DNA of 63,910 bases, counting the filler, from Lenisia limosa (taxonomy: Eukaryota > Protista > Breviatea), in NCBI GenBank assembly GCA_001655205.1. It is 7 parts of 7 records of this genome, joined end to end, with 100 filler letters (N's around TTAATTAATTAA, not from the genome) between each part and the next. Parts side by side here need not be neighbours in the genome. Positions count along the whole stretch, not along the records: positions 23,159 to 43,501 come from LPNZ01006601.1; 6 more parts are not named here. One strand, given 5' to 3'. Numbering within the stretch: the stretch's first letter is position 1; each line of letters begins with the position of its first letter. A program made the translations under genes and the position numbers. This document shows positions 23,159-43,501 of the stretch, piece after piece. The notes below the pieces were generated by a model that ran no database searches, was not told the origin of the DNA, and was given only the letters and a program-made list of their open reading frames with translations.

Positions 23159-23653
23159 GGGGGGGGGTAGTGGTGGGTTACACGGTGGTCCGCAAAGCAG
23201 GTAATTATCGAGATTCATATACCATATTGGGATATTCTAAAAAAAAAGGATTAAAATGATAATATGGATGCGGTGCTGCAGAAAAGACTGGCCTGGCTGT
23301 TTGTTTTGTTCTCAACCCTCGTGTGTTGTCAGCCGACAGAGTTGATTTGGGCTTTTTTTTTGTTTCTCCAATTTTGCTCCCCTTCTTGTTTTTTTTTTTT
23401 TTTTTTTNNNNNNNNNNNNNNNNNNNNNNNNNNNNNNNNNNNNNNNNNNNNNNNNNNNNNNNNNNNNNNNNNNNNNNNNNNNNNNNNNNNNNNNNNNNNN
23501 NNNNNNNNNNNNNNNNNNNNNNNNNNNNNNNNNNNNNNNNNNNNNNNNNNNNNNNNNNNNNNNNNNNNNNNNNTCGATATGCGCTTCGACCGCACAGCAG
23601 AGAGACAGATCCCGAAAATCAAGAAGATTGTCATGAAGGATCAGGTTCAATAA
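23159..23653 (+). CDS. 3' fragment of an unknown gene (terminal exon DMRFDRTAERQIPKIKKIVMKDQVQ*)
   Basis: Open frame after the N gap ending in TAA at 23651-23653. It is preceded by a pyrimidine-rich intron end; candidate donor cag|gtaatt at ~23201. Confidence 0.4.
23265..23395 (+). repeat. Intronic hairpin repeat family A, copy 1
   Basis: atgcggtgctgcag...tttgttttgttctcaaccctcgtgtgttgtcagccgacagagttgatttgggc; matches 28806, 54868 and 63182. Confidence 0.85.
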
Positions 23654-23829
23654 ACTATTTAACAACAAAGCACATGGCTCCAGGGCTTGTTACTAATATT
23701 TAATATTCACCTGCAATAAAAGCTCACGTTTTCTAATAAGCACACAACAATATACATTACCTAAGTCATACTTTTAATTTTATACACGAACAGAAAACAA
23801 ACAAGAAGAAAATCGGAAGTGACACAGCA

Positions 23830-26800
23830 TCACTGCATTTGAACCGCCTCGGCAGAAATAGGTTCCATACCCACAACTGGCTCAACCGCACCTTGACTGA
23901 GGGGTGTGCTGGGATATCAGCTGCCATAGGTATTATATTATTTTTTTACACACGATATTGATACAATTATTCTTCAAGAAATTTCATTTCACGCACAAGA
24001 GTAGGACAAATGATGATGATAAAATGATATACAGAAGTAACAACTAACCTTGGGGGAACAATTGCAGCTCCGTTTGGATCCTGTGGGAAAATAGTGGGCA
24101 CTGGAGGTTCCGCATACGACTGAAAAGAGAATCAATATAATATAGGGAACGCTCATTGCATTTTTTTAAGTGCAACAGATCCCCAGAACACGAAACACAA
24201 ACATGATTTCAGACTGACGTAATGTGGATATTCATCAATATGCTTACTCCTTCAACTTGAACAAGAGGAGGCAGCTGCAACATTTGTAATTCATTGTCCA
24301 GAGGAACTACGGGGATTTCTCCTTGCTACTCTTGTCAGGAATATTGTGGGGGCAATGATAGTTAATACCTTCCACCCACCAAAAAGACCCCCCTTTCATA
24401 CCAAGGATTGTAACTGTTGGATGGCTTCTTGTGAGACAAAATCGATGGGTGGCTGTCATAGTGAAAAATGTGTGAGGTTCGGAGAAATTGGTAAAATATC
24501 AATTTTACTGGCTTCCTTAACAATTAGCAGCAATCCAGAAAATTGTCACGGATATCCGAACCAAAAGTTTCGGTGACGTTATCTTTTAGCTACTTTTTAC
24601 TAGAATATCAAGAAGATTTTGCTCAGTGATAATCACAACATTTGCTCTCTTGCTTTCAAAACAACTGCTTTTATAACAGCAAATAAAAATCAAGCTCGAT
24701 TTTGACGCCATTTGTAGTTTATCCGAGCCAGTTTCTGGGTTGGCACCCTGCTTTAAAAATCACCCTCACATATAATAAATGATATTAAAAATTGCAAATG
24801 AAATGTTATTTCACCTATACAACCCAGCCTACCAATTGATAGTTCACACCTGGAACCTGAAGGAATAAGAAATACGGAGAAATAACTCAAATATTCCAAT
24901 AGTACTTTGAATTGCAATTATACAACTGAAATCCCTTTTTTCCTCCCCCCCCCCCCNNNNNNNNNNNNNNNNNNNNNNNNNNNNNNNNNNNNNNNNNNNN
25001 NNNNNNNNNNNNNTCGATTTCATCCACAGCCCGTCTCTTATTCCGGCCTTGGTTGAGGCGAGCAACAGATCTAATCTCATAAGATCCGTATATTTTTGAG
25101 AGCAAAAGAGAAAAAGGTACATTAAGGTTATCTGCTAACAATACCTCGTCAATAAAGGGTTACACTTTTAATCTATTAACGCAAGAAGTTCTCGACAGTC
25201 TCTACCCCCTTACGGATGGGCAAAAGCAGTCTGAAGTTTCTCGAGGGGTGTTTGGCCCGAAGTGGTCAGTTGGAAGTAGTGTGTACTAAACCAGAGTTAA
25301 ACGAATGCAGGTTCAGCCAACAAATTTGTCACAAGTGATAGTTGGAGCTTGTTACAATAAAAATATTAAACCTGATAGATGCAACAGATCAGGAACGCAA
25401 TAAAGTGAGGTGGGGTGCCTACCAGAGTTTGAGGAGAAGATCTTTACTCACACCGGCTGGCACCACTTCAGCGAAGTCAGGAACCCTCACTTCGTCAACC
25501 ATCTTTCCGATCCTTTTGATCTCACAAATACGACTGCTTGCTGTGGGAGAGGGGCAAGTGAATAAACGAAGGACACTTCGATGAAGAAGGGGGAGAGGAA
25601 TGGTGTAGCAAAACCAAAAAAAAAGGAATTACGAAGAAATAGCTTTTTGTAACACTGACCAAGACAAGGTCTGAACCTATTTAATACTGGTTCTTAACTA
25701 ACCTAGCGTACCATAATCGACCGTAATACTCAAGTCGATATTATATGCTATTCACTTCCACCAACCAGCATTATTGATAAAGGACATTTGCCAGGCGGGA
25801 ATAGTCACCAAAGCTCTCATTGTGGAGGTTCCAGCCTGGGAGAGTGAAACGAAGGAAATGTTCAAAAAAGAAGCCAGCATTTAATCAAGAAGAAAGTGTT
25901 CTTAGGCAAGCTAAATATTCGATATCTGAGTACCATTAGATCTGTTGCATTTTTGCCCATCTTAATCCTCCCGAATATTAAACATCAAACACCCTCCCCA
26001 CGTAGGTCCATGAATGCGCCTGAAGCCACCCCGAGGGCTTTGGGAAAGTTGCAGTGGTGCAGATGTAGGGCCACAAGTCACGGGGAAGGGATTTGATTCT
26101 GAAATATATGAAAATAGAACTACACATATACACTCATATATCTACACACAAATAGTATCTGGAAAAACATGTAGTAATAAATTTGTTGCATTGGAAGGCA
26201 ATAACTAAAGCAACGAGTATTCATTTATTATATCAAGACAATATGTACATGTACTTGTAGTATATCATTGATACCACACCCTCCCACCCACCTTTCAATA
26301 ACAAGAGAAAGTTCAGCATCTTCCTCCTCTCCTTGGCTAACCTGATGGTCCTAACACGTGAGTCTTCACATTATATCCAAAACCATGATTTCTCACAGCA
26401 ATTTCATCCATTCTTTGGAACTTGACTCTTTCCCAAAATATTCTATCGTTATTGTTTTCATCTGTTGAAAGAGACACGATTACGACAGCTCTTTCACTAT
26501 TTTGACAGCGATAAATCCCCCNNNNNNNNNNNNNNNNNNNNNNNNNNNNNNNNNNNNNNNNNNNNNNNNNNNNNNNNNNNNNNNNNNNNNNNNNNNNNNN
26601 NNNNNNNNNNNNNNNNNNNNNNNNNNNNGGTTGTGGGCGGCGTAATATGCTCCCATGCTTAGTTGGGGGGCTTCCGTGGTGTTGTCAGCTCTAGCATAGT
26701 GAACAACGGGTTATGTGTCATGACGACAGTGGCAAGATTTTCTATTACACAAGAACCTACGGTAGACTTGGTGTGAAGAGGGCCCCGGGGCTGGCCCCTG

Positions 26801-27260
26801 TTGAAAGAGCATCTGAAACTGTCATTGCAGTTTATTAATATTTTTCATGACATTACAATTTGTAACACAAAAAATAGATTAAAATATTGTCAAAGATAGC
26901 AAAAGGGTTTAATCTGACGTAGGCTGTCATATTTCTATTGAGCATAAGACACACACACAAAGTTGATCTGTACCTCAAAAATGAAGAAACCATAACGGAG
27001 GGCATTGTAGGCGCGAAATAGTTACACTTGTTATCTTGTTTTCCGTTAAAGTTTTTCAAACCTAAAACAGCAGCTGTGGCCTCCGCAGACGGCGTTGACA
27101 ACTGGGAGATAAAAGTGGGAAACATGGAAGAAATCGAACCCAGGGTGAAGGCTGACCCACAAAACAACATCAACATGTGTTTATTCCAATCCACGGTAGA
27201 GAAAAGACTATGGAGACCAACCTCAACATCCACAGGTTCCTGCATGACGGGTTCTGACAT
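23830..27260 (-). CDS. Probable multi-exon gene (or genes) of unknown function; hydrophobic N-terminal segment, Pro-rich C-terminus
   Basis: ORF 26853..27260 (MSEPV...HMLMLFCGSAFTLGSISSMF). GT-AG-bounded open exons such as SRICEIKRIGKMVDEVRVPDFAEVVPA (~25540), GEIPVVPLDNELQMLQLPPLVQVEG (~24320) and SYAEPPVPTIFPQDPNGAAIVPQ (~24120). No family recognised; exon linkage uncertain. Confidence 0.35.
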
Positions 27261-27864
27261 TTTGCAAATCTGGACTGTCCAATTTTTGATAGTTTGTTAT
27301 ATATAGTGGTACTCTATTCGAATCCAACCTTGAAGTTGCAATCAGTTCCCTGGAAACAAAGTGTAAAAAAAAGAACAATCAGATATACTTCTGTTGCCTA
27401 GTTATTTGTGTTAATGTACTGTGTTGTTGTTAGTGCTATGGGGCTATGGCGGCCAAGAGGTTCATACTGTTGAAAATGCGACCCCAAAAAGGACAGTGTA
27501 TAAAGGGTAAGAGTTACAATTTAGATGATTTGATTTGAAAATGTTGGGCCTCTTTCTTATCCTTAGAACAAAGCAAAATATCACACTTTCTTTGTTTTGG
27601 CATTTAGATTTGTTATTTGTAGTAAACTGTTGTCAATAGGTTGTAACCAGACAGAGCTATTAAGCGTTTGAACGTCTGTTCACTCTAAATAACGTCTAAT
27701 TTAATTGTTTCTGGCAGGGTTAGGCAGATTAAGCTGCATTCCTTCCGATATCCTCTGTAAGCTGTTCTGCCATTCCTACTTCTCTTATTTTATCGACAGC
27801 AATAAACTACGTGGTGAAAATCAAAGTCAGTTACTCACAGCCCAGTTCCCCCGCTTCATTTGCT

Positions 27865-30034
27865 ATGGCAATCCCAAATCAGAAAAGGAGAGACCTCTCT
27901 CATGGTATGTTCTCATTTGGGGCTCTTAAAACCTAAGCCTTAAACAGCATTAAAGTGGGGAATATTTTAGAATGGTTTTGTTATTCTGTGTCTTATTTTT
28001 TCAGAAGACTACCCTGTCCTTGGCCTAAAACGTGAGTGGGAAGAACACTTTTTAAGAGGAGGGAAACGCATAAGTTTTTTGGGATAAGTGTAGAGTGGTT
28101 ATTCTTTCATTGTGATGATAATCGATCCAATTGTTCAATTATAAATGAGATTATAAAATGAGAGCTCCCAGTGCACTGTTCTTTGTATTCTCATTGCCAT
28201 GTACTTTTTATATGGTTGCTCACGAGTGCAGCAACGCAGGAAGATTTCCCATCCCTCCCTTCTTCAATGCAATCGGTTCCCCAGCCTCAGTCACATCAGC
28301 ACCACCAAGCCAATAGACAGCAGCTGCAACAACAGCAGCAGCAGCAACAGCTCCACGTTCAGCAACAACAACAGCAGCAACAGCAATCCCTCCCAAGTTC
28401 CACCGTCCCCGCTCCTGCCGCAGCTTCCATGGTTGGCCTCTTACGTAGAATCCACATTTTTAATTCCTTTATATTTCTTCCTCCCTCACCTTCATCTATT
28501 ACTCGTTTGTGGTTTTCATCTCAGGAAGTCTAGATTTCAGGCTAGATTTGCGCACCTTCACCTCTCTCACACTACCCCGACTCTCACACGTGTTTTTGTT
28601 TTTGCGTTAATATTGAATAGACCCAAAAACAGACCCAACCCGCCTCCACACCCGCACCACCTCAAGACGATGATAGCAAATGGAAGGTGAAAGGGACAAG
28701 TGTTATTGTGTGGAGGGTTGAGAGGGATTTGTTGATTTGCCGGAGTTGGTTGAAAGTAGCAGCTTGTAAGTAGTATAAGATCACAGTGGGCCAACCAGTT
28801 AACCAGTGATGGGACGCGGTGCTGTAGAAGCGACTCACCAGGGCTTTTTTTTTGTTTTGTTGTTCTCAACCCTCTTGGTGTGCTGTCAGCCAACAGAGTT
28901 GATTTGGGGTCCATAAATTGTCCAATTTACCCCCTCTCCCTCTCCAGGTTCTTGGTATTGTGGATGTTGTGAAGCAGAAGAATCGTGAGCTCTCCAACAT
29001 CACACTAGGAATGGACTTGACATCTTTGGGACTCAATTTGACCTCTTCTGAGTAGGCTCACCTCCGTTTTCTCCTTCAGGACTTTGAGCCATGTTGATCC
29101 ACATTGTTTCTATATTCAACTTCACATTCACATGAGGTACCTTTTCTGTAATTGGAAGTAAACTTCGATCATATACCCGATATTTTAGCCTGGCATCCCG
29201 CGTCACCTCATATTTGTAGCGTGCTGTACCCCACATTCAGTTCGCCTTGGCAGGCACCATTAGCTGCTAACCACAATCGCGATGCGTCTGTGCCCCATTG
29301 CTACTACCTCCAAAACTCGACCTTGGTGTGTGGACTTCTCAATTTTTTAATAATTTTGCTCCCCCCCCCCTTTTTTTTTACAGCCGGACACTTTTTTTTT
29401 ATTATTATTTTTTTCCCAACTTCAACGTGTATATAATATGGTATATGGTTATTGGCTTACATTGCATTGTTTGTATCCTTATAAGTGCGAAGAGATGTCC
29501 GACATGATATCCGCTTTTCAACTTTTCCTTTTTGTCTGATCAATAGATCCAACCCCCAATCACTATGATCGAGAAGTATTCCGAAGATAACCTCCTTTGT
29601 ATCTTCTACTCCATGCCGGGGGATGCAATTCAAGTCAAGGCCGCCCAGCAATTGTAGGCACAGGGGATTTAAATAAAAAAATGTTGGAGTCAATAGTTTC
29701 ACTTATGCTAGTAACCTTATTATCCAGATATAGCCTTCCACTACTTTAATTTCCGCACATATCTTCGTGTATAACATTCATCAGGACAACAAAGAAAGGC
29801 TGGTTCTACGACCAGTCTAAACAACAGTGGCTTAAGCTCATTAGTAGCACTTCAAGGACCCCGCAATATATCACAGGAAACTTTGAGGTACGAATGAGAA
29901 TCTTTTTTTAAGAAAGCTATGGTCCAGTATCTTTTTTTTGTTTTTTGATTAATTAGGCGTTAAACCCTTCAACATGGACAAAGGAGCCGCTGTCAAGTTA
30001 CACCCTTATGTTATCAAATGTGTACACTCCATAG
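27865..30034 (+). CDS. CNOT2: CCR4-NOT complex subunit 2 (NOT2/3/5 domain) with N-terminal polyQ region
   Basis: Exons: VLGIVDVVKQKNRELSNITLGMDLTSLGLNLTSSE (28949), LYPTFSSPWQ...SVPHCYY (~29220), KYSEDNLLCIFYSMPGDAIQVKAAQQL (~29575), GWFYDQSKQQW (~29800), NPSTWTK...YTP*. These match the NOT-box signature; the EDFPSL motif lies upstream. Confidence 0.9.
28310..28386 (+). repeat. CAG/CAA trinucleotide repeat (polyglutamine) in a CNOT2 exon
   Basis: QQLQQQQQQQQLHVQQQQQQQQQ. Confidence 0.9.
28806..28948 (+). repeat. Intronic hairpin repeat family A, copy 2 (CNOT2 intron ~28687-28948)
   Basis: gtgatgggacgcggtgctgtagaagcgac...ttgttttgttgttctcaaccctcttggtgtgctgtcagccaacagagttgatttgggg...tccaatttacccc...ccag. 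Confidence 0.9.
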
Positions 30035-30787: not shown

Positions 30788-31385
30788 GAACTTGGTAGTG
30801 TGGATGTATAACAGTGGTTTGATGGTTGTTTTATCTTTTGTGAAATAAATATTTTCTTTTTTCTTCTGCCAGTGTAGAATACAAGAGAGACACTATTTTT
30901 GGTGTTTGTTTTGAAGTAAAGCTTTGATAGACTGTTTGTGGTCTGTGCACACATTGTTCCCAGTTTTCTTCTGTGCGTTTACCTTTCTTTGAGTTTCTTC
31001 TGCCCCCCTCTTTTCAAATGTCTTTTTATATTATGTGTCATTATCGATATCATAATTTTCTGAGTTGTTTCTTTGATTTGGTGATGTCCCGATGGGGAGG
31101 CTCCATACAATTTTCCTTTTCGCCCTCCCCTACTCCTATTTCTACCAGGCTTTGTTTGGTAATTACTGAATATTCAAAGTGCTATATTTTGATAATCCCC
31201 GTTTTACCCCCACTCCATTGGGATGCGGTCTGCGGAAGCGAGCTTTTATTATTATTATTATTATGTTTTGTTGTAAATTCTCCATTTTTACTCCCACACC
31301 ATCAGTTATTTGAAACAATGGAAATCTACATCCAAATAAATAAAATACACTACTACTTGAGATTAAATAAGGGTAACGTGAGTGT

Positions 31386-34083
31386 CTACTGTGAGGCTGA
31401 AGCAAGGCTGGTGATTACATCAGTTTTTAGGTCGCTCACACGGTCAGCTCTGTAGGGTAAAGAAGTATGGGAGTGGGGGNNNNNNNNNNNNNNNNNNNNN
31501 NNNNNNNNNNNNNNNNNNNNNNNNNNNNNNNNNNNNNNNNNNNNNNNNNNTGCTTACGTGAAGATCTTCGGACCGCCTTTCATTGGAGTTTTTCTGACTG
31601 GCGTTTTCTGTGGAGTGAAACAGATGATGGGTGTAATGCTGCATCCGACAGTGCGATATGACTTTGTATTCCCGCTATTATAAAAAATCACAGAGTTATC
31701 TAAGACAATAATAGTGTGTACCTTCGGGGAATTGAGGAACCTCTTGGTGGGGGTGGAGGGCAGGGTGTGTTTAGAAGGGGTAGAGGGGACAGAAGAGGGT
31801 TGAGGCATAGTGTTGGAGCTGAACGTCATTGTAAGGCGTCGACGCGCGCTGTGGTCGGCTGACAACGAGAATCTGGGCGACTTCAGGCGGGGAGAACCGG
31901 CTGCGGGTGAACTGAATTCGGTAAGATCAACTAACCTCTCTAAATGTAAGAAACGCGAAGATAATCTGCGGTGGTGGTGGGGTATTTGTCACACCAATAT
32001 TCCAGTACAATATGGGCGAACCCCATTTGAAACACTCATAATTCGCCTCTTACTTGGTAAGCGAGGCAAACCCTGTTTTAATGGGGCTTTGGGATAGTTC
32101 CATGGGACTTGAGGGTGATGTCACCCTAGAAAATAAGCAAGATGGATTTCATGTTTGGGAATCAATGTGATTAATATTCTGAAAAATTCCCTTCCCACTT
32201 TTTGATATTCTTTACTTCAGCCACGACAATTGGAAAGTCATCATGCTCCAGGAACTTCTCATAGAAAATGACCGCCAGCCCCATTGAGTCCTTAAAGAAG
32301 TTAGTTTTGGGGGGAAATGGGGGACATGGTTTAACGTGTATTACATGAATCACTTGTAGCTGAAAGAAGAAAAACAAATAATCACAAAAATACTCTTGGA
32401 TATTGCAAAACAAGAGTTCTGTAATATTCAAATAAAGTGACAGTAGAGAGCCTACTTTAAGCGGACTGCGCTTGATGGATTTGTAGTGTTTGAAAGTGAG
32501 GGACTATTGGGTGAGAAGAAAAAGTGGTTACAGTCTCCTCAGCCCCCATACACCACCTTAACAGTGTGTCATATTAGTATTATAATATTATTAATTGCTG
32601 AATACTTAAATAAGGTGGGAACGTTGTGATATCGTCTGAATAATAAAATATAGTTATTTACAACTGATAACTATAATTATGAAATATTGAAATTAATGGT
32701 GTCCATTCTATCTATGTACCAAATTGATCCCTAATCTTACCCTGCTGGGTCCGAATAATCTTTGGATAAATCCCCCCCTTCAGCAACAAAGCACCCCTAA
32801 CCATTTCTGGGAAGATATCGCTATATTCCTCATTCTCCTCCAGATTCTGTGAATTCGAAATCTTCTCCGTGATAACTGAGATGGATTCACGAGCCTACGG
32901 TATGAGGTTAAGAAAGCCAGCCGGAAGCATCCCTTCAAGCACATAACTACTTTACCGATATTTACATAATCATTCATATGTTGTACAAGATCCCAAACAG
33001 TACAAACTATATCCACCCATATTCATATGAAAGCAAACAGGCGAAATACTCAGATATTCAAAGTGACACAGCGAAAACACACACCATGTCTTCTGTAAGG
33101 TTCCTGCCCATAATGACAACTTCAGGATGCTCCAGGAAGTAGAACAAGCCCACAGCTAGATGGAGTGAAAATACCAAAACAATATTGAGGAATATTGGGA
33201 TTAGGGTTTAGTGTATTACAGGTTATTCAGATATCATCCGAACAAGTAATATTCTTGCGGTCTGGGAACAGAAATAATAAGATGACTCCTTACCCCCTCC
33301 TCACAGTATGCAGTGTTTTTCTTTGTCAATGCACAGCGGGCTGGTAGGAAGCGAACATCATAACCCCTTTTGTCCAAGGACCGGAGTAACTTCTTGTCAC
33401 TGCTATCCTGGGGGGGGGGTGAACAACAAGTACATTATGCATATAAAGTACACCGCATTATATAACAATAAAAAAGGAATGATGGAAGAAGAAAAGAGAA
33501 AAAGAAAAGAAAGGAACGAAGAAGAAAGGAATACGAAACAAAGAATAAAGGAAGAATGACACACGAAGAGGAAAGAAAGAAAGGAAGGATCCAGCCTACG
33601 AAGCACCCCGCCTTTTTGAGTAGCTTTGCACGTCGAATTAAGTTTTGCTGTCTATTCAGGAGAATCTTTCCGTCAACAACTGCAGCATAAGTAATAGAAA
33701 ATTAGAGTAGCCAACACATCAATCGCATGCAATTATAACTCCATCTTTTCTTGTAAATAACTATAATACAAAATTGCTTGAAAGTAATACTTCCACCTTG
33801 GCCAGTTTTCATCCCCCCCTTACTCTCGGGCTCTTCTTCCTGACTGCTCACAGGAACTTCCTCGACTAAAGTGTTAGGATGACAGGAGAAACTGTTGCAG
33901 TGGAGGGGGGGGGGCATGAGTAGCCAGTTTGCTTTAACAATTACATTAGTAGAGACAACATAAACCAAATGCAATATCAAACCACAAGAACAAATTGCCA
34001 TTTCCCCTCATCTCATGCCCACCTTCAGGTTTTGTGACCTTGTCATTCCAGGTGCGAGTGAAGATACTCCACCATCGGCTCAT
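31386..34083 (-). CDS. DUF4262-like protein with Ser/Pro-rich C-terminal tail
   Basis: Phase-consistent spliced model: MSRWWSIF...DSSDKKLLRSLDKRGYDVRFLP...NTAYSVGLFYFLEHPEVVIMG...DSMGLAVIFYEKF...FPIVV. The AYSVGL..HPE motif is recalled from DUF4262; not searched. Confidence 0.55.
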
Positions 34084-40719: not shown

Positions 40720-43340
40720 GCCCTTTCGGCCCCTACTACATTACTTCGTATGTTAATGAGCGTGCTATTATTTGTGTTGCTATTTCTTCCAATCAGCCTC
40801 TTTGGCCAGACCCTTACCCATGACTCCACTGTGGCTTTTGAAGGTTAGCTGGTTGACTATGCGTTCTATATGTCACCTCTTTTTACCAAGCACTGAATGT
40901 CACATTGCTCTTAGCTTTGATATATCAAGCCTGATTGGACTTTTCTTACACATGCATATGATAAAACGCTGTGAGGTCCTCTTATTGCTAATACAATAAA
41001 CCATTTGTGGGGTCTGCTATTTTCATCCAAGATAAGCCTCCAAGGTAACAAACTTAGGGACAGTGAGGGCTACAGTATTTTGCGATGAGTGCCCCCCTGC
41101 CGCTTCCCAGCCTTGTGGTCAGGTATGTGGACGAAAACACCGCTCCAAAGGCCGTTCTGAAGCCTTTGTACAAAAAAACAAAATATCCATGACCCAGTTG
41201 TCAAGGATTTGTTTCACTTCTTTTTCCTTTTTGTATAATAACACCAATCTACCAGGCCGTAGTAAACTCTTGCGGAGAGGCTTGCAGCACAACTGGTACG
41301 GGTTATAATGTCAACCAGTGTCTTTACAAAGCATCTCTCGGAGTGTGCGGTATGAGTGTAGGCAGGGGGTCAGGTGCTACCAGGTTGTCCTAATCTAATA
41401 TTTTTCATCACTAAAAAAATATATATTCTCGTAGATTGACTGGGAAATTAGTTCATAGGGGGGCTACCTTTGATAGTATTCTTCTTCCTTAGTGTAATTG
41501 CCTGATAATGCCTTTGTGTTGATATAATCATATGCATATGATATGTATTTTCTAACAGTCACTTCTCTTTCCGCACCCCTTCATCTCTGCTCTTGCTGCA
41601 GGTGAAGGACAATTGCGGTAACAGCTGCATGGATATGCCAGGTAGTGCATGTCTTACCGGCTTTTGTGTTGAAGGTGTGTGGAGGGGGGGGGGTATTTTT
41701 TAACATTTGTGACGGGTATCATTTTATGAAAGTTATTACAGGCTGAAGGTTGTGTTATTTCCACTACGTTATGATACTACTGCATCGTGTGTGTTTTTCA
41801 ATACATTCCGACTCTTGTTCAAACTAGTTTAACTTGTAAGGAAAGTGCAAAGTGCCCACAAGCTGCGGGGATTACCAGACACTCTTTGAAGATGGTATGT
41901 GGCTGTGCAGTTGCCCTTGGGGTGGTGATCTTGTTTGTTGGTGTGTTTTCGTTTTACTCATTGGAATATCAGATTATTGGGTTCGTGGTGAGTAAGCCAA
42001 TACTCTCTATTTAGATTTCTTTCATTTTTCCTCACCCTTCCCCCAGATACCTTGAGTGTCAAAGAAGTCAGTGTTGATGGAGTCATACAAGATGTTGTGT
42101 GTGACAACAGACGTAAGAGGGCTTCTTTTGCGTCTTGTGTGCTCTAATGTTATCTAATCCTTTATTTTCTGTACTCTCCTATCACTGGGGCATCACTCCA
42201 TCCGAAATAGACCTGGACAATATACTTTATCGAGGATTTATTGAAGATTCAGTATTCTATTTTTACAATTGAAGTCTTGTTTTCTCTGATTTTGCACTGT
42301 CATTTCGTTTTTCTGTTTCTACTCATTTTCAATTGCCTTCGCTTGCTAATAGCTGATATTTTTCTTTCATTTGTTTCCACTTAACCCCCCTCCCCCAGCT
42401 CTGATTCTTGGGGGCGGTTGGATGTTTGTGCGGCGCTTGAAGCCCTACGCAACTGCCTTTTTCCCTTGTACTGACAACACTGTTGGTATGCTGATTCATT
42501 CTGTTTTTTTGAACCGCAAATGTTTGCGAAGTGACACTATCAAATGTCTTGGCTTCTTTCTTTACACCCCACCTTCTTAGGCTCAGCTTCTTTCGGGACA
42601 TACGTTGCGGATCACCTGGCTGACGCAACCTTTTCAATGAAGTGTGTTCTTGGGATATTTAGTTTAAATTATATTGACATCAAATTCGTGGGTTAATTCA
42701 TTTGATTATTTCATTTGCGTACGTTATTTAAGAAACCAACAGGAAGCCAATTCCCTTCACGCACCTCAGGTACGACAACATCCCCCATACCCAGCGGCTC
42801 TTTGCTTACGGCACATTCAGCGGGTGGACTGTTATGGACAATGATATGATTGCTGTGGGGGGGGGGGGTGAAAGAAACTATAGACGGGAAACTAGATNNN
42901 NNNNNNNNNNNNNNNNNNNNNNNNNNNNNNNNNNNNNNNNNNNNNNNNNNNNNNNNNNNNNNNNNNNNNNNNNNNNNNNNNNNNNCCTTTTAGACACAAA
43001 CGGTCTGTAACGTTGACCGCATGGTTGTTGCTACTAGTCTCAACCAAAGCCCCCATAACCTTGCCATGTGCAATAGGGCAACTGGTAAGTGGGATGCGCT
43101 TTATATCATACTATATCGTTTATTATATAGCAGTGAGAAATAAAATAAGGTAGTATCTGGCCGAAGCCGTCTACACCATCACGCGTATTACATGTATACC
43201 ATAATACTGGGTTGGCAGTAGTGTTATTGTATATTATGCTTTTTTTTTTGCTAGGTGCAATTGTGCAATATAGTACAACAAGTCTTTGAGCGTTATGACT
43301 TGGGCTTCCCTGCGGTCCGAAAAAGAACAGTACTATTTAG
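40720..43340 (+). CDS. Cys-rich protein with a C-terminal fibrinogen-related-like (VxCD...GGGW) domain; ends uncertain
   Basis: Exons: FCDECPPAASQPCGQ, NSCGEACSTTG...QCLYKASLGVC, DNCGNSCMDMPGSACLTGFCVE, VIQDVVCDNR, LILGGGWMFVRRLKPYATAFFPCTDN, SASFGTY...DATFSMK, RLFAYGTFSGWTVM. Confidence 0.6.
43127..43184 (+). repeat. Intronic repeat family B, copy 1
   Basis: tagcagtgagaaataaaataaggtagtatctggccgaagccgtctacaccatcacgc; matches 47699 and 63592. Confidence 0.75.
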
Positions 43341-43501
43341 AATAGCTATCGAAAATTTCACTCTTTTTTGGGACCAGAGGGAAGCCATATTGTGGTATTG
43401 ATAATGTATCATATTATTTATTGGCCTTTACTTGGTTTTATAATAAAACTGGAAGTATATTCCATCCTATCAGGAATTACCTCTGAGAAGCGAAGTCCAT
43501 A

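Follow-up and report, generated by a model that had tools for sequence, protein, structure and literature searches.

A high-copy, intron-resident repeat family on the acceptor side of introns in the breviate Lenisia limosa

What kind of sequence settles in sense orientation at the 3′ end of introns in unrelated genes? The question is raised by a 63,910-nt stretch of DNA, filler between its joined parts included, from the breviate Lenisia limosa (GenBank assembly GCA_001655205.1; hereafter the window), in which an earlier note had described a repeat, here called family A, and had offered three readings of it: an introner-like mobile element, a family of structured RNAs, or a hairpin that controls splicing by masking the branch point. 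We find that family A is a real, high-copy, dispersed and non-coding family, that its copies lie overwhelmingly in sense at the 3′ terminus of introns, where a branch-like motif and a C tract abut the acceptor AG, and that they stack into arrays. Together with a shorter second family, B, these sequences are in our judgment probably mobile, non-autonomous elements that accumulate between branch point and AG and supply the intron with a branch site and a pyrimidine tract.

The copy with the best defined surroundings, copy 2 (28804–28929, + strand), lies in a CNOT2-like gene. DNA contigs from one run and poly(A) RNA contigs from one run were mapped on positions 23159–29150, and the RNA contigs gave exon pieces of this + strand gene at 28232–28430 and 28946–29051; because the 65 letters between these pieces fit a 66-nt exon at 28621–28686, the host intron is 28687–28947. 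Copy 2 forms the 3′ half of this 261-nt intron, in sense and up to the acceptor, behind 119 nt of single-copy sequence (DNA depth 33 in the bin 28559–28758). It opens with GTGATGGGACGCGGTGCTG at 28806 (head GTGATGGGACGCGG) and runs through a T-rich linker and an imperfect palindrome (28866–28902) to ..GTCCAATTTAC (tail ..CCAATTTAC); directly behind its TTTAC follow a tract of C and T only and the acceptor (28930–28947), the intron ending in CAG and an RNA contig piece starting at 28946/28948. Against the family model copy 2 scores E = 5e-33 (nhmmer, positions 5–136 of 138) and is 90–92% identical to the consensus.

Copy 1 (23265–23385, + strand; E = 4e-30 against the family model) starts some 60 nt past a CAG/GTAATT donor at 23200/23201. 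Its tail reads TTTTGC, the branch A being lost, and is followed by a T run and a gap of N's. An RNA contig of the exon 23574–23653, the last of a small + strand gene (..DMRFDRTAERQIPKIKKIVMKDQVQ, then stop), extends at least 255 letters upstream, of which at least 30 match nothing in the piece 23159–43501; as this contig runs upstream into the gap, the N's at 23408–23573 conceal exon sequence. Copy 1 is likely to be intronic, with its acceptor concealed in the same gap. The two copies lie on the same strand and agree at 80% of aligned columns, a 19-mer common to them occurs at no other position of the piece 23159–43501 (0.01 expected), and a profile made from both returns them at E = 3e-43 and 7e-37. 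Of the four copies reported, two, at 23265 and 28806, fall in the part of the window analysed here (23159–43501). Both are present as described, and the claim that copies are sense and intronic is borne out for copy 2 by the RNA contigs, while for copy 1 the sense orientation stands and the intronic position is only likely. It is also correct that the similarity runs on to the 3′ splice site, as tail and C/T tract up to AG, and that the 5′ part of the intron is unrelated: 119 unique nt precede the element in the CNOT2 intron.

How common such copies are is suggested by the depth of the DNA contigs. Two element-bearing bins reach 93,070 and 17,799, compared with a single-copy word depth of about 33 (500- to 2800-fold), and 2,708 DNA contigs in all fall on 23159–29150, nearly all of them at 90–99% identity. 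Summed contig depth is not equal to copy number and gives the order of magnitude only, namely 10^3 diverged copies, which excludes an artefact of adapters or assembly. Over the element itself there was almost no RNA contig.

Further copies were found by way of proteins. A scan of JGI metagenome contigs with a conserved 25-mer of the element gave no match, nor did a word-indexed protein search with its translation. When 36 residues of the copy 1 translation were used in an exhaustive HMMER search, however, 58 proteins matched, and 56 of these are open reading frames (ORFs) reading through the element on different contigs, at 64–94% identity (ENA assembly ERZ3820729, coverage 24–33x). Such ORFs exist because in family A one frame starts at an ATG of the head and stays open across the C run, which reads as poly-Pro. 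The gene calls stored with ERZ3820729 do not give the recorded products under table 11, one of them containing 7 stops, and evidently come from a caller of prokaryote style working under another genetic code; they were unusable as proteins. When the spliced prefoldin protein and one window ORF were looked up exactly, no contig was returned. Ten loci around element-containing ORFs (L001–L010, 128 kb) were taken for analysis, and the statistics given below span 148 kb.

From this sample family A emerges with a consensus of about 138 nt, in the order GCTGGAGTGATGGGATGCGG.., T/G-rich linker, palindrome, TTGATTTGGG, T run and ..CATAAATTTTCCAATTTTAC, usually followed by a run of C. One copy (L004:10328–10461) is 98.5% identical to the consensus, and the copies spread around it in a star-like manner at 69–98.5% identity. 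Family B is about 78 nt long and ends ..AAATTTCCTTCGTTTTAC with a C run; A and B have the same 3′ end, TTTTAC and a run of C. The ends of the element can accordingly be written GCTGGAG.. and ..TTTTAC(C)n, the C run being there in most copies. The 57 matches to A and 26 to B make up 52 arrays of one to five elements each, and inside an array all elements share one strand and are joined tail to head, at B-to-A as at A-to-A junctions. Tails are kept in 37 of 46 A matches and heads in 28. Family B also occurs at intron 3′ ends in sense, either alone or fused behind A, and a shorter form of it, from model position 30 onwards, recurs as an A–B composite (L003:10169–10561 and L005:9994–10310). The piece 23159–43501 holds one B copy (41961–42028, + strand; 81% identity to the B consensus, nhmmer E = 8e-8), which forms the 3′ half of a predicted 150-nt intron (41896–42045); here a GATG/GTATGT donor, the end ..CCTCACCCTTCCCCCAG and an open frame past the AG were read from the sequence.

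Three C-run sites of the window, at 29352, 33410 and 42857, had been considered as degenerate copies of family A and were rejected. The first of these (29352–29383, AATTTTGCT(C)10(T)9ACAG) begins 28 nt into another CNOT2 intron (29324–29546), resembles an A tail and contains a 13-nt exact match to copy 1, with a non-significant nhmmer E value of 2.9. A GGTGAGT on the antisense strand of copy 2, which looks like a 5′ splice site, is private to that copy and was dropped as a feature of the family.

Is the position seen in the CNOT2 intron the rule? In the L004 locus, a + strand protein-kinase gene according to collinear Pkinase matches in Pfam, one intron consists of GTGAGC, 36 unique nt, an A copy (81%), a B copy, a second A copy (98.5%) and T(C)10AG, after which an open frame continues in phase, and another intron, filled by elements in the order A-A-B-A-B, has TTTTACT(C)12TAG at its end. 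Pfam searches with single short exons behind elements gave nothing useful, and we therefore adopted a second-order Markov classifier of exon and intron composition, trained on RNA joints, on collinear Pfam matches and, in several instances, on our own reading of the sequence; its leave-one-out accuracy on 60-nt pieces was 90% for exons and 83% for introns. In 37 of 44 arrays the first AG past the terminal tail is followed by 60 nt that are exon-like, compared with 44% after random AGs (p = 4e-8), while the 60 nt upstream of arrays are intron-like in 44 of 51 and exon-like in 7 (Mann–Whitney p = 6e-12). Arrays that had no role in the discovery of their locus give the same picture past the AG (20 of 25 exon-like, p = 2e-4). 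Polarity is kept where the strand changes within a locus, L010 having five arrays on the − strand and two on the +, and the C-rich tract from tail to AG has a median length of 16 nt. Roughly 80–85% of arrays thus conform to the pattern of sense orientation at the 3′ end of introns. The hosts are unrelated: the CNOT2-like gene, the kinase, and dozens of arrays beside unrelated exon-like flanks. Upstream flanks differ among all copies, and unique sequence separates the element from the donor, 119 nt of it in the CNOT2 intron and 36 nt in L004.

The earlier note had argued that random insertion would not give such an orientation and position, and on the larger sample of 52 arrays this argument holds. 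An ordinary transposon might still insert at random and leave the same pattern if, given a tail that mimics a 3′ splice region, selection spared only sense copies that have the true acceptor as their next AG. The native 3′ splice region of this organism is indeed similar to the tail, tails are kept more often than heads, and since the genome is gene-dense and introns make up about two thirds of a gene, an intronic location would in any case be expected of most surviving insertions. Antisense copies and copies in the 5′ part or middle of introns should, however, be neutral under such a regime, yet they are almost absent from the 148 kb, and both the tail-to-head stacking and the surroundings of the heads described below indicate that the site is chosen when the element inserts. 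The copy that adjoins the exon, moreover, tends to be the youngest. We consider random insertion followed by selection unlikely.

The surroundings of the heads bear on where the elements insert. Of 41 heads, 17 have a same-strand run of 6 or more C in the 40 nt upstream, compared with 2.4% of background windows (a 17-fold excess), and among the proteins, an independent sample, 8 of 26 heads come after poly-Pro. These upstream C runs usually follow a branch-like motif. That motif varies from head to head (TTGAC, CTTAC, GTCAC, TTTCAC, or the tail of a B element) whereas the end of the element is always ..CCAATTTTAC, so that the tail motif belongs to the element and does not represent a duplicated target. 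The elements appear to insert into a pyrimidine tract behind a branch motif, or into an earlier element's tail. There are 11 arrays with at least two A copies, and in 8 of these the exon-proximal copy is closer to the consensus, an age gradient that suggests repeated insertion beside the acceptor. A pyrimidine run with AG directly ahead of the element was found at 7 of 65 junctions (3.3% expected, p = 0.005) and is a minor pattern, and it was rejected as a general rule.

The C runs also invite an explanation that does without a transposon, namely that gene conversion or template switching at flanking C or G runs carried a sequence module from one intron end to another. Such runs stand on both sides of many copies and are very common in general (12 of at least 7 in 20 kb), no duplicated target site or terminal inverted repeat has been found, and the A–B composite recurs at two loci. 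Against it stand the order of 10^3 copies with their star-like spread at 69–98.5% identity around a single consensus, the fixed 3′ end combined with variable 5′ ends, and the fact that the first copies in an intron, copy 2 among them, often have no C run upstream. We regard conversion or template switching as quite unlikely. Between 23159 and 43501, the homopolymer runs counted above are 7–13 C or G in length (e.g., at 24945, 29361, 33410, 33905, 35177, 41684 and 42857); several border assembly gaps of N's, and some stand directly ahead of a possible acceptor, such as CAC(C)10AG at 33410 on the minus strand.

Which part of the element could serve as a branch site? The earlier note had pointed to TTGAT in the 3′ arm of the palindrome as a candidate at the expected distance, and this needs correction: TTGAT lies 45 nt from the acceptor of the CNOT2 intron, as compared with 8–22 nt for such motifs in verified introns. 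In 15 verified introns of the window the nearest yTnAy is mostly 8–12 nt from the intron end, and in three it is at 18–22 nt; one verified intron of 59 nt has none within 50 nt, and TTCAC is the commonest form overall. A native 31-nt intron (L004:10565–10595) has GTTTAC 8 nt ahead of its AG. The TTTAC at the end of the element is the better candidate, because it lies 18 nt instead of 45 nt from the acceptor: in copy 2 it places a branch-like A at 28929, with only C and T from there up to the AG. Judged by its sequence, the intron 28687–28947 would have no other plausible branch site than this element-borne TTTAC. In the introns between 23909 and 29219 and in the short L004 intron, branch-like motifs (often TTCAC or TTTAC) lie unusually near the acceptor, introns can be as short as 31 nt (as in L004), and donor sites are weakly conserved (GTnrGn).

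The palindrome had been taken as a hairpin, and the second and third readings of the earlier note depend on it: the element could be a functional intronic RNA, either a structured RNA or a hairpin that controls splicing by masking the branch point. Its position relative to the acceptor is constant, and among 22 copies a consensus hairpin of 13 interrupted base pairs is paired in 89% of cells. But neither pairing nor double changes nor covariation exceeded those of shuffled alignments of the same 22 copies (117/500, 82/500 and 42/500 shuffles, respectively), and the RNAalifold consensus energy of −1.4 kcal/mol amounts to no consensus fold. On the sense strand of the two copies examined, the whole element (z = +1.3 and +0.3) and the hairpin (z = −0.3 and +0.4) fold no better than shuffled sequence; the palindrome of copy 2 (28866–28902, + strand) has a folding energy of −11.1 kcal/mol, and the hairpin is steadier on the antisense strand (z = −3.1 in copy 2 and −1.0 in the other copy) than on the sense strand. 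Rfam gave no match at E up to 10 on copies 1 and 2, nor up to E 1 on the piece of the window. Copies without the hairpin also stand at intron ends, hardly any RNA contig contains the element, and the TTGAT that was to be masked is 45 nt from the AG, outside the 8–22 nt range. There is thus no support from compensatory changes and no RNA-structure signal for a structured non-coding RNA family; the stem goes back to the founder sequence and was not maintained after insertion, and a functional RNA of either type is highly improbable.

This leaves the first reading, which came closest of the three. Introners are transposons that generate introns, in Micromonas, Aureococcus, dinoflagellates, fungi and others; the working definition asks for similarity that leaves no more than about 10 intronic nt before the 5′ splice site and comes near to the 3′ splice site, in four or more introns whose genes are not paralogous (Gozashti et al., 2022, PMC9860276; 2025, PMC12130899). 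Like introners, family A is a high-copy, non-coding family found in sense in introns of unrelated genes and carrying splice signals, in its case TTTTAC and a C tract at the intron 3′ end. The similarity reaches the 3′ splice site and extends over more than four non-paralogous introns, but it stops 30–120 nt or more before the donor, the 5′ part of the intron being unique, and copies stack in existing introns instead of making one intron each. Since the similarity never reaches the donor side, family A falls outside the working definition of an introner.

It might nevertheless be argued that family A is a true introner, each insertion making a new intron for which the element gives the acceptor side and a cryptic GT upstream is recruited as donor. 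Some introners are known to carry one splice site and to take the other from the target (PMC9860276; PMC12130899), the GTGATGG at the start of the element together with branch site and C tract (and AG) at its end resembles a whole intron, and some host introns are nearly all element, with 36 and 30 unique nt. In every case examined, however, the donor lies in unique upstream sequence, and the CNOT2 RNA uses 28687 and not the GT at 28806. The 119 unique nt of that intron contain no in-frame former exon, a stop occurring after 27 codons, and both the intron-like upstream flanks (44 of 51 arrays) and the stacked arrays speak of insertion into introns that already existed. We therefore hold a true introner to be very unlikely. 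Survey pipelines for introners discard families that reach one boundary only as "secondary insertion" (PMC9860276; PMC12130899), and because such insertions are removed, a family anchored at the 3′ side would be missed by design. L. limosa is absent from the text supplementary tables of the 2022 survey (PMC9860276), and our literature search found no published description of its repeats or introns.

Family A also invites comparison with other classes of mobile element. Alu and other short interspersed elements (SINEs) of mammals are short and non-autonomous, with a homopolymer 3′ tail and many 5′-shortened copies; new Alu copies land in the tails of older ones, which gives tandems of one orientation, and the pyrimidine-rich strand of an intronic Alu can act as pyrimidine tract and acceptor. 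Family A is alike in its homopolymer tail, in its fixed 3′ and variable 5′ end and in stacking in tails, but its tail is oligo(C) and not oligo(A), it has no head of tRNA, 5S or 7SL type with an RNA polymerase III (pol III) promoter, no clear target-site duplication (TSD) is seen beyond the C run, and no partner long interspersed element was found in the 148 kb. The orientation bias of Alu is mild, whereas that of family A in orientation and position is near-total, and family A normally supplies the acceptor region that is used. Site- or repeat-specific retrotransposons without long terminal repeats target microsatellites or small-RNA genes in an orientation-specific manner, at sites resembling their own 3′ end; the target of family A, in contrast, would be a functional class of site, the intron pyrimidine tract, and not one repeat or gene family. 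MITEs (miniature inverted-repeat transposable elements) that reside in introns share with family A the size, the copy number, the lack of coding capacity and the frequent intronic location, but family A has neither terminal inverted repeats (TIRs) nor a fixed short TSD, and its strong strand and position bias is absent in MITEs. The TIR or TSD ends of a known transposon, which the earlier note had named as refuting its proposal, were accordingly not found. The signature of Helitrons (5′ TC, 3′ CTRR, a GC-rich hairpin nearby and insertion between A and T) is lacking as well, the palindrome of family A lying about 35 nt from the end and being AT-rich, unlike the Helitron hairpin. Family A is thus best classed as an introner-like or SINE-like intron-resident element and not as a member of the introner, SINE, MITE or Helitron families.

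Our explanation for families A and B as mobile elements of the branch-point-to-AG interval could be completed as follows. The elements would integrate in one orientation only and into C-rich pyrimidine tracts, the targets being the interval from branch point to AG in introns and the C tails of earlier copies. With each insertion a branch site close to the consensus (TTTTAC) would arise anew ahead of the AG, together with a pyrimidine tract; for this reason insertions would be harmless, and the host intron would grow at its 3′ side. As to how integration occurs, one might guess, by analogy with the insertion of Alu into A tails, that target-primed reverse transcription copies an RNA whose 3′ tail is oligo(C). 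We further raise, as a tentative possibility that we ourselves rather doubt, that A and B home strand-specifically to the branch-point-to-acceptor interval, replacing the host's branch site and pyrimidine tract so that introns accrete at the 3′ side, and that they are elements of a kind so far undescribed. Homing might be coupled to splicing or to a structure formed by C/G runs.

Several points weigh against this explanation. Exon calls in the fetched loci come from the composition classifier, from one gene with collinear Pfam matches and from reading frames, not from RNA. The loci were chosen via element-containing ORFs, which favours copies beside open frames, although arrays other than the index arrays behave alike, and the contigs of ERZ3820729 are presumed to be from L. 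limosa on the grounds of common repeat families, a similar coverage of 25–33x and the same intron features. About 15–20% of arrays have no exon-like sequence behind the AG. Among the exceptions is copy 3 (31216–31295, + strand), first noticed as a weaker match to the head, which consists of head, linker and tail with the palindrome deleted and is probably intergenic, between convergent genes: the prefoldin-like gene ends nearby (AATAAA at 30843), and the strand skew switches there. In copy 1, with its lost branch A, the acceptor is at least 40 nt further away. No TSD was detected beyond the C run (matched 0.29, mismatched 0.33), copy 3 alone being bordered by a 17-nt direct repeat (15/17, p about 5e-4) that starts with TTTTAC. 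No TIRs were seen, as no inverted repeat joins head and tail and the consensus ends differ; Rfam and ARAGORN, the latter with empty output, revealed no tRNA-, 5S- or 7SL-like head, and the internal T run on the + strand would terminate pol III. No reverse-transcriptase or transposase ORF (at least 300 aa with transposable-element character) occurs in the 148 kb. The retention of tails, finally, might reflect selection on a splice signal in use instead of truncation from the 5′ side.

The neighbourhood of these copies contains some further features. Pfam finds NOT2_3_5_C in the exon 29547–29654, downstream of copy 2, and Prefoldin_2 in the gene that follows. A minus-strand gene at 23741–27455 has at least 13 introns according to the RNA contigs, and its 380-nt intron 24453–24832 harbors a different repeat (24530–24700), unrelated to A and B, at a DNA contig depth of 222–1584 compared with about 33 alongside, 23 contigs having in common a C>A change at 24562. 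At 43286–43402 there is a long, near-perfect hairpin for which Rfam gives mir-81 (E = 0.32) and MIR319 (E = 0.42), on both strands and far under the gathering scores, and which is probably just an inverted repeat.

The mutual shaping of transposons and introns is an open question, and the introners known so far make whole new introns. Family A, by comparison, behaves like half an introner, bringing its own branch-site-like motif and pyrimidine tract to the 3′ end of an intron, and the host apparently uses the branch site and pyrimidine tract that the element provides. It does so as a high-copy family on the acceptor side of many introns, in a breviate, which is related to animals and fungi and branches deeply. 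If the site preference is true, it would amount to a strategy by which a transposon finds a safe haven in a genome dense with genes, to a concrete way for introns to lengthen, and to a plausible precursor of introners. Should the elements indeed home to the branch-point-to-acceptor interval, the step that is missing between ordinary transposons and introners could lie in half-introners such as these.

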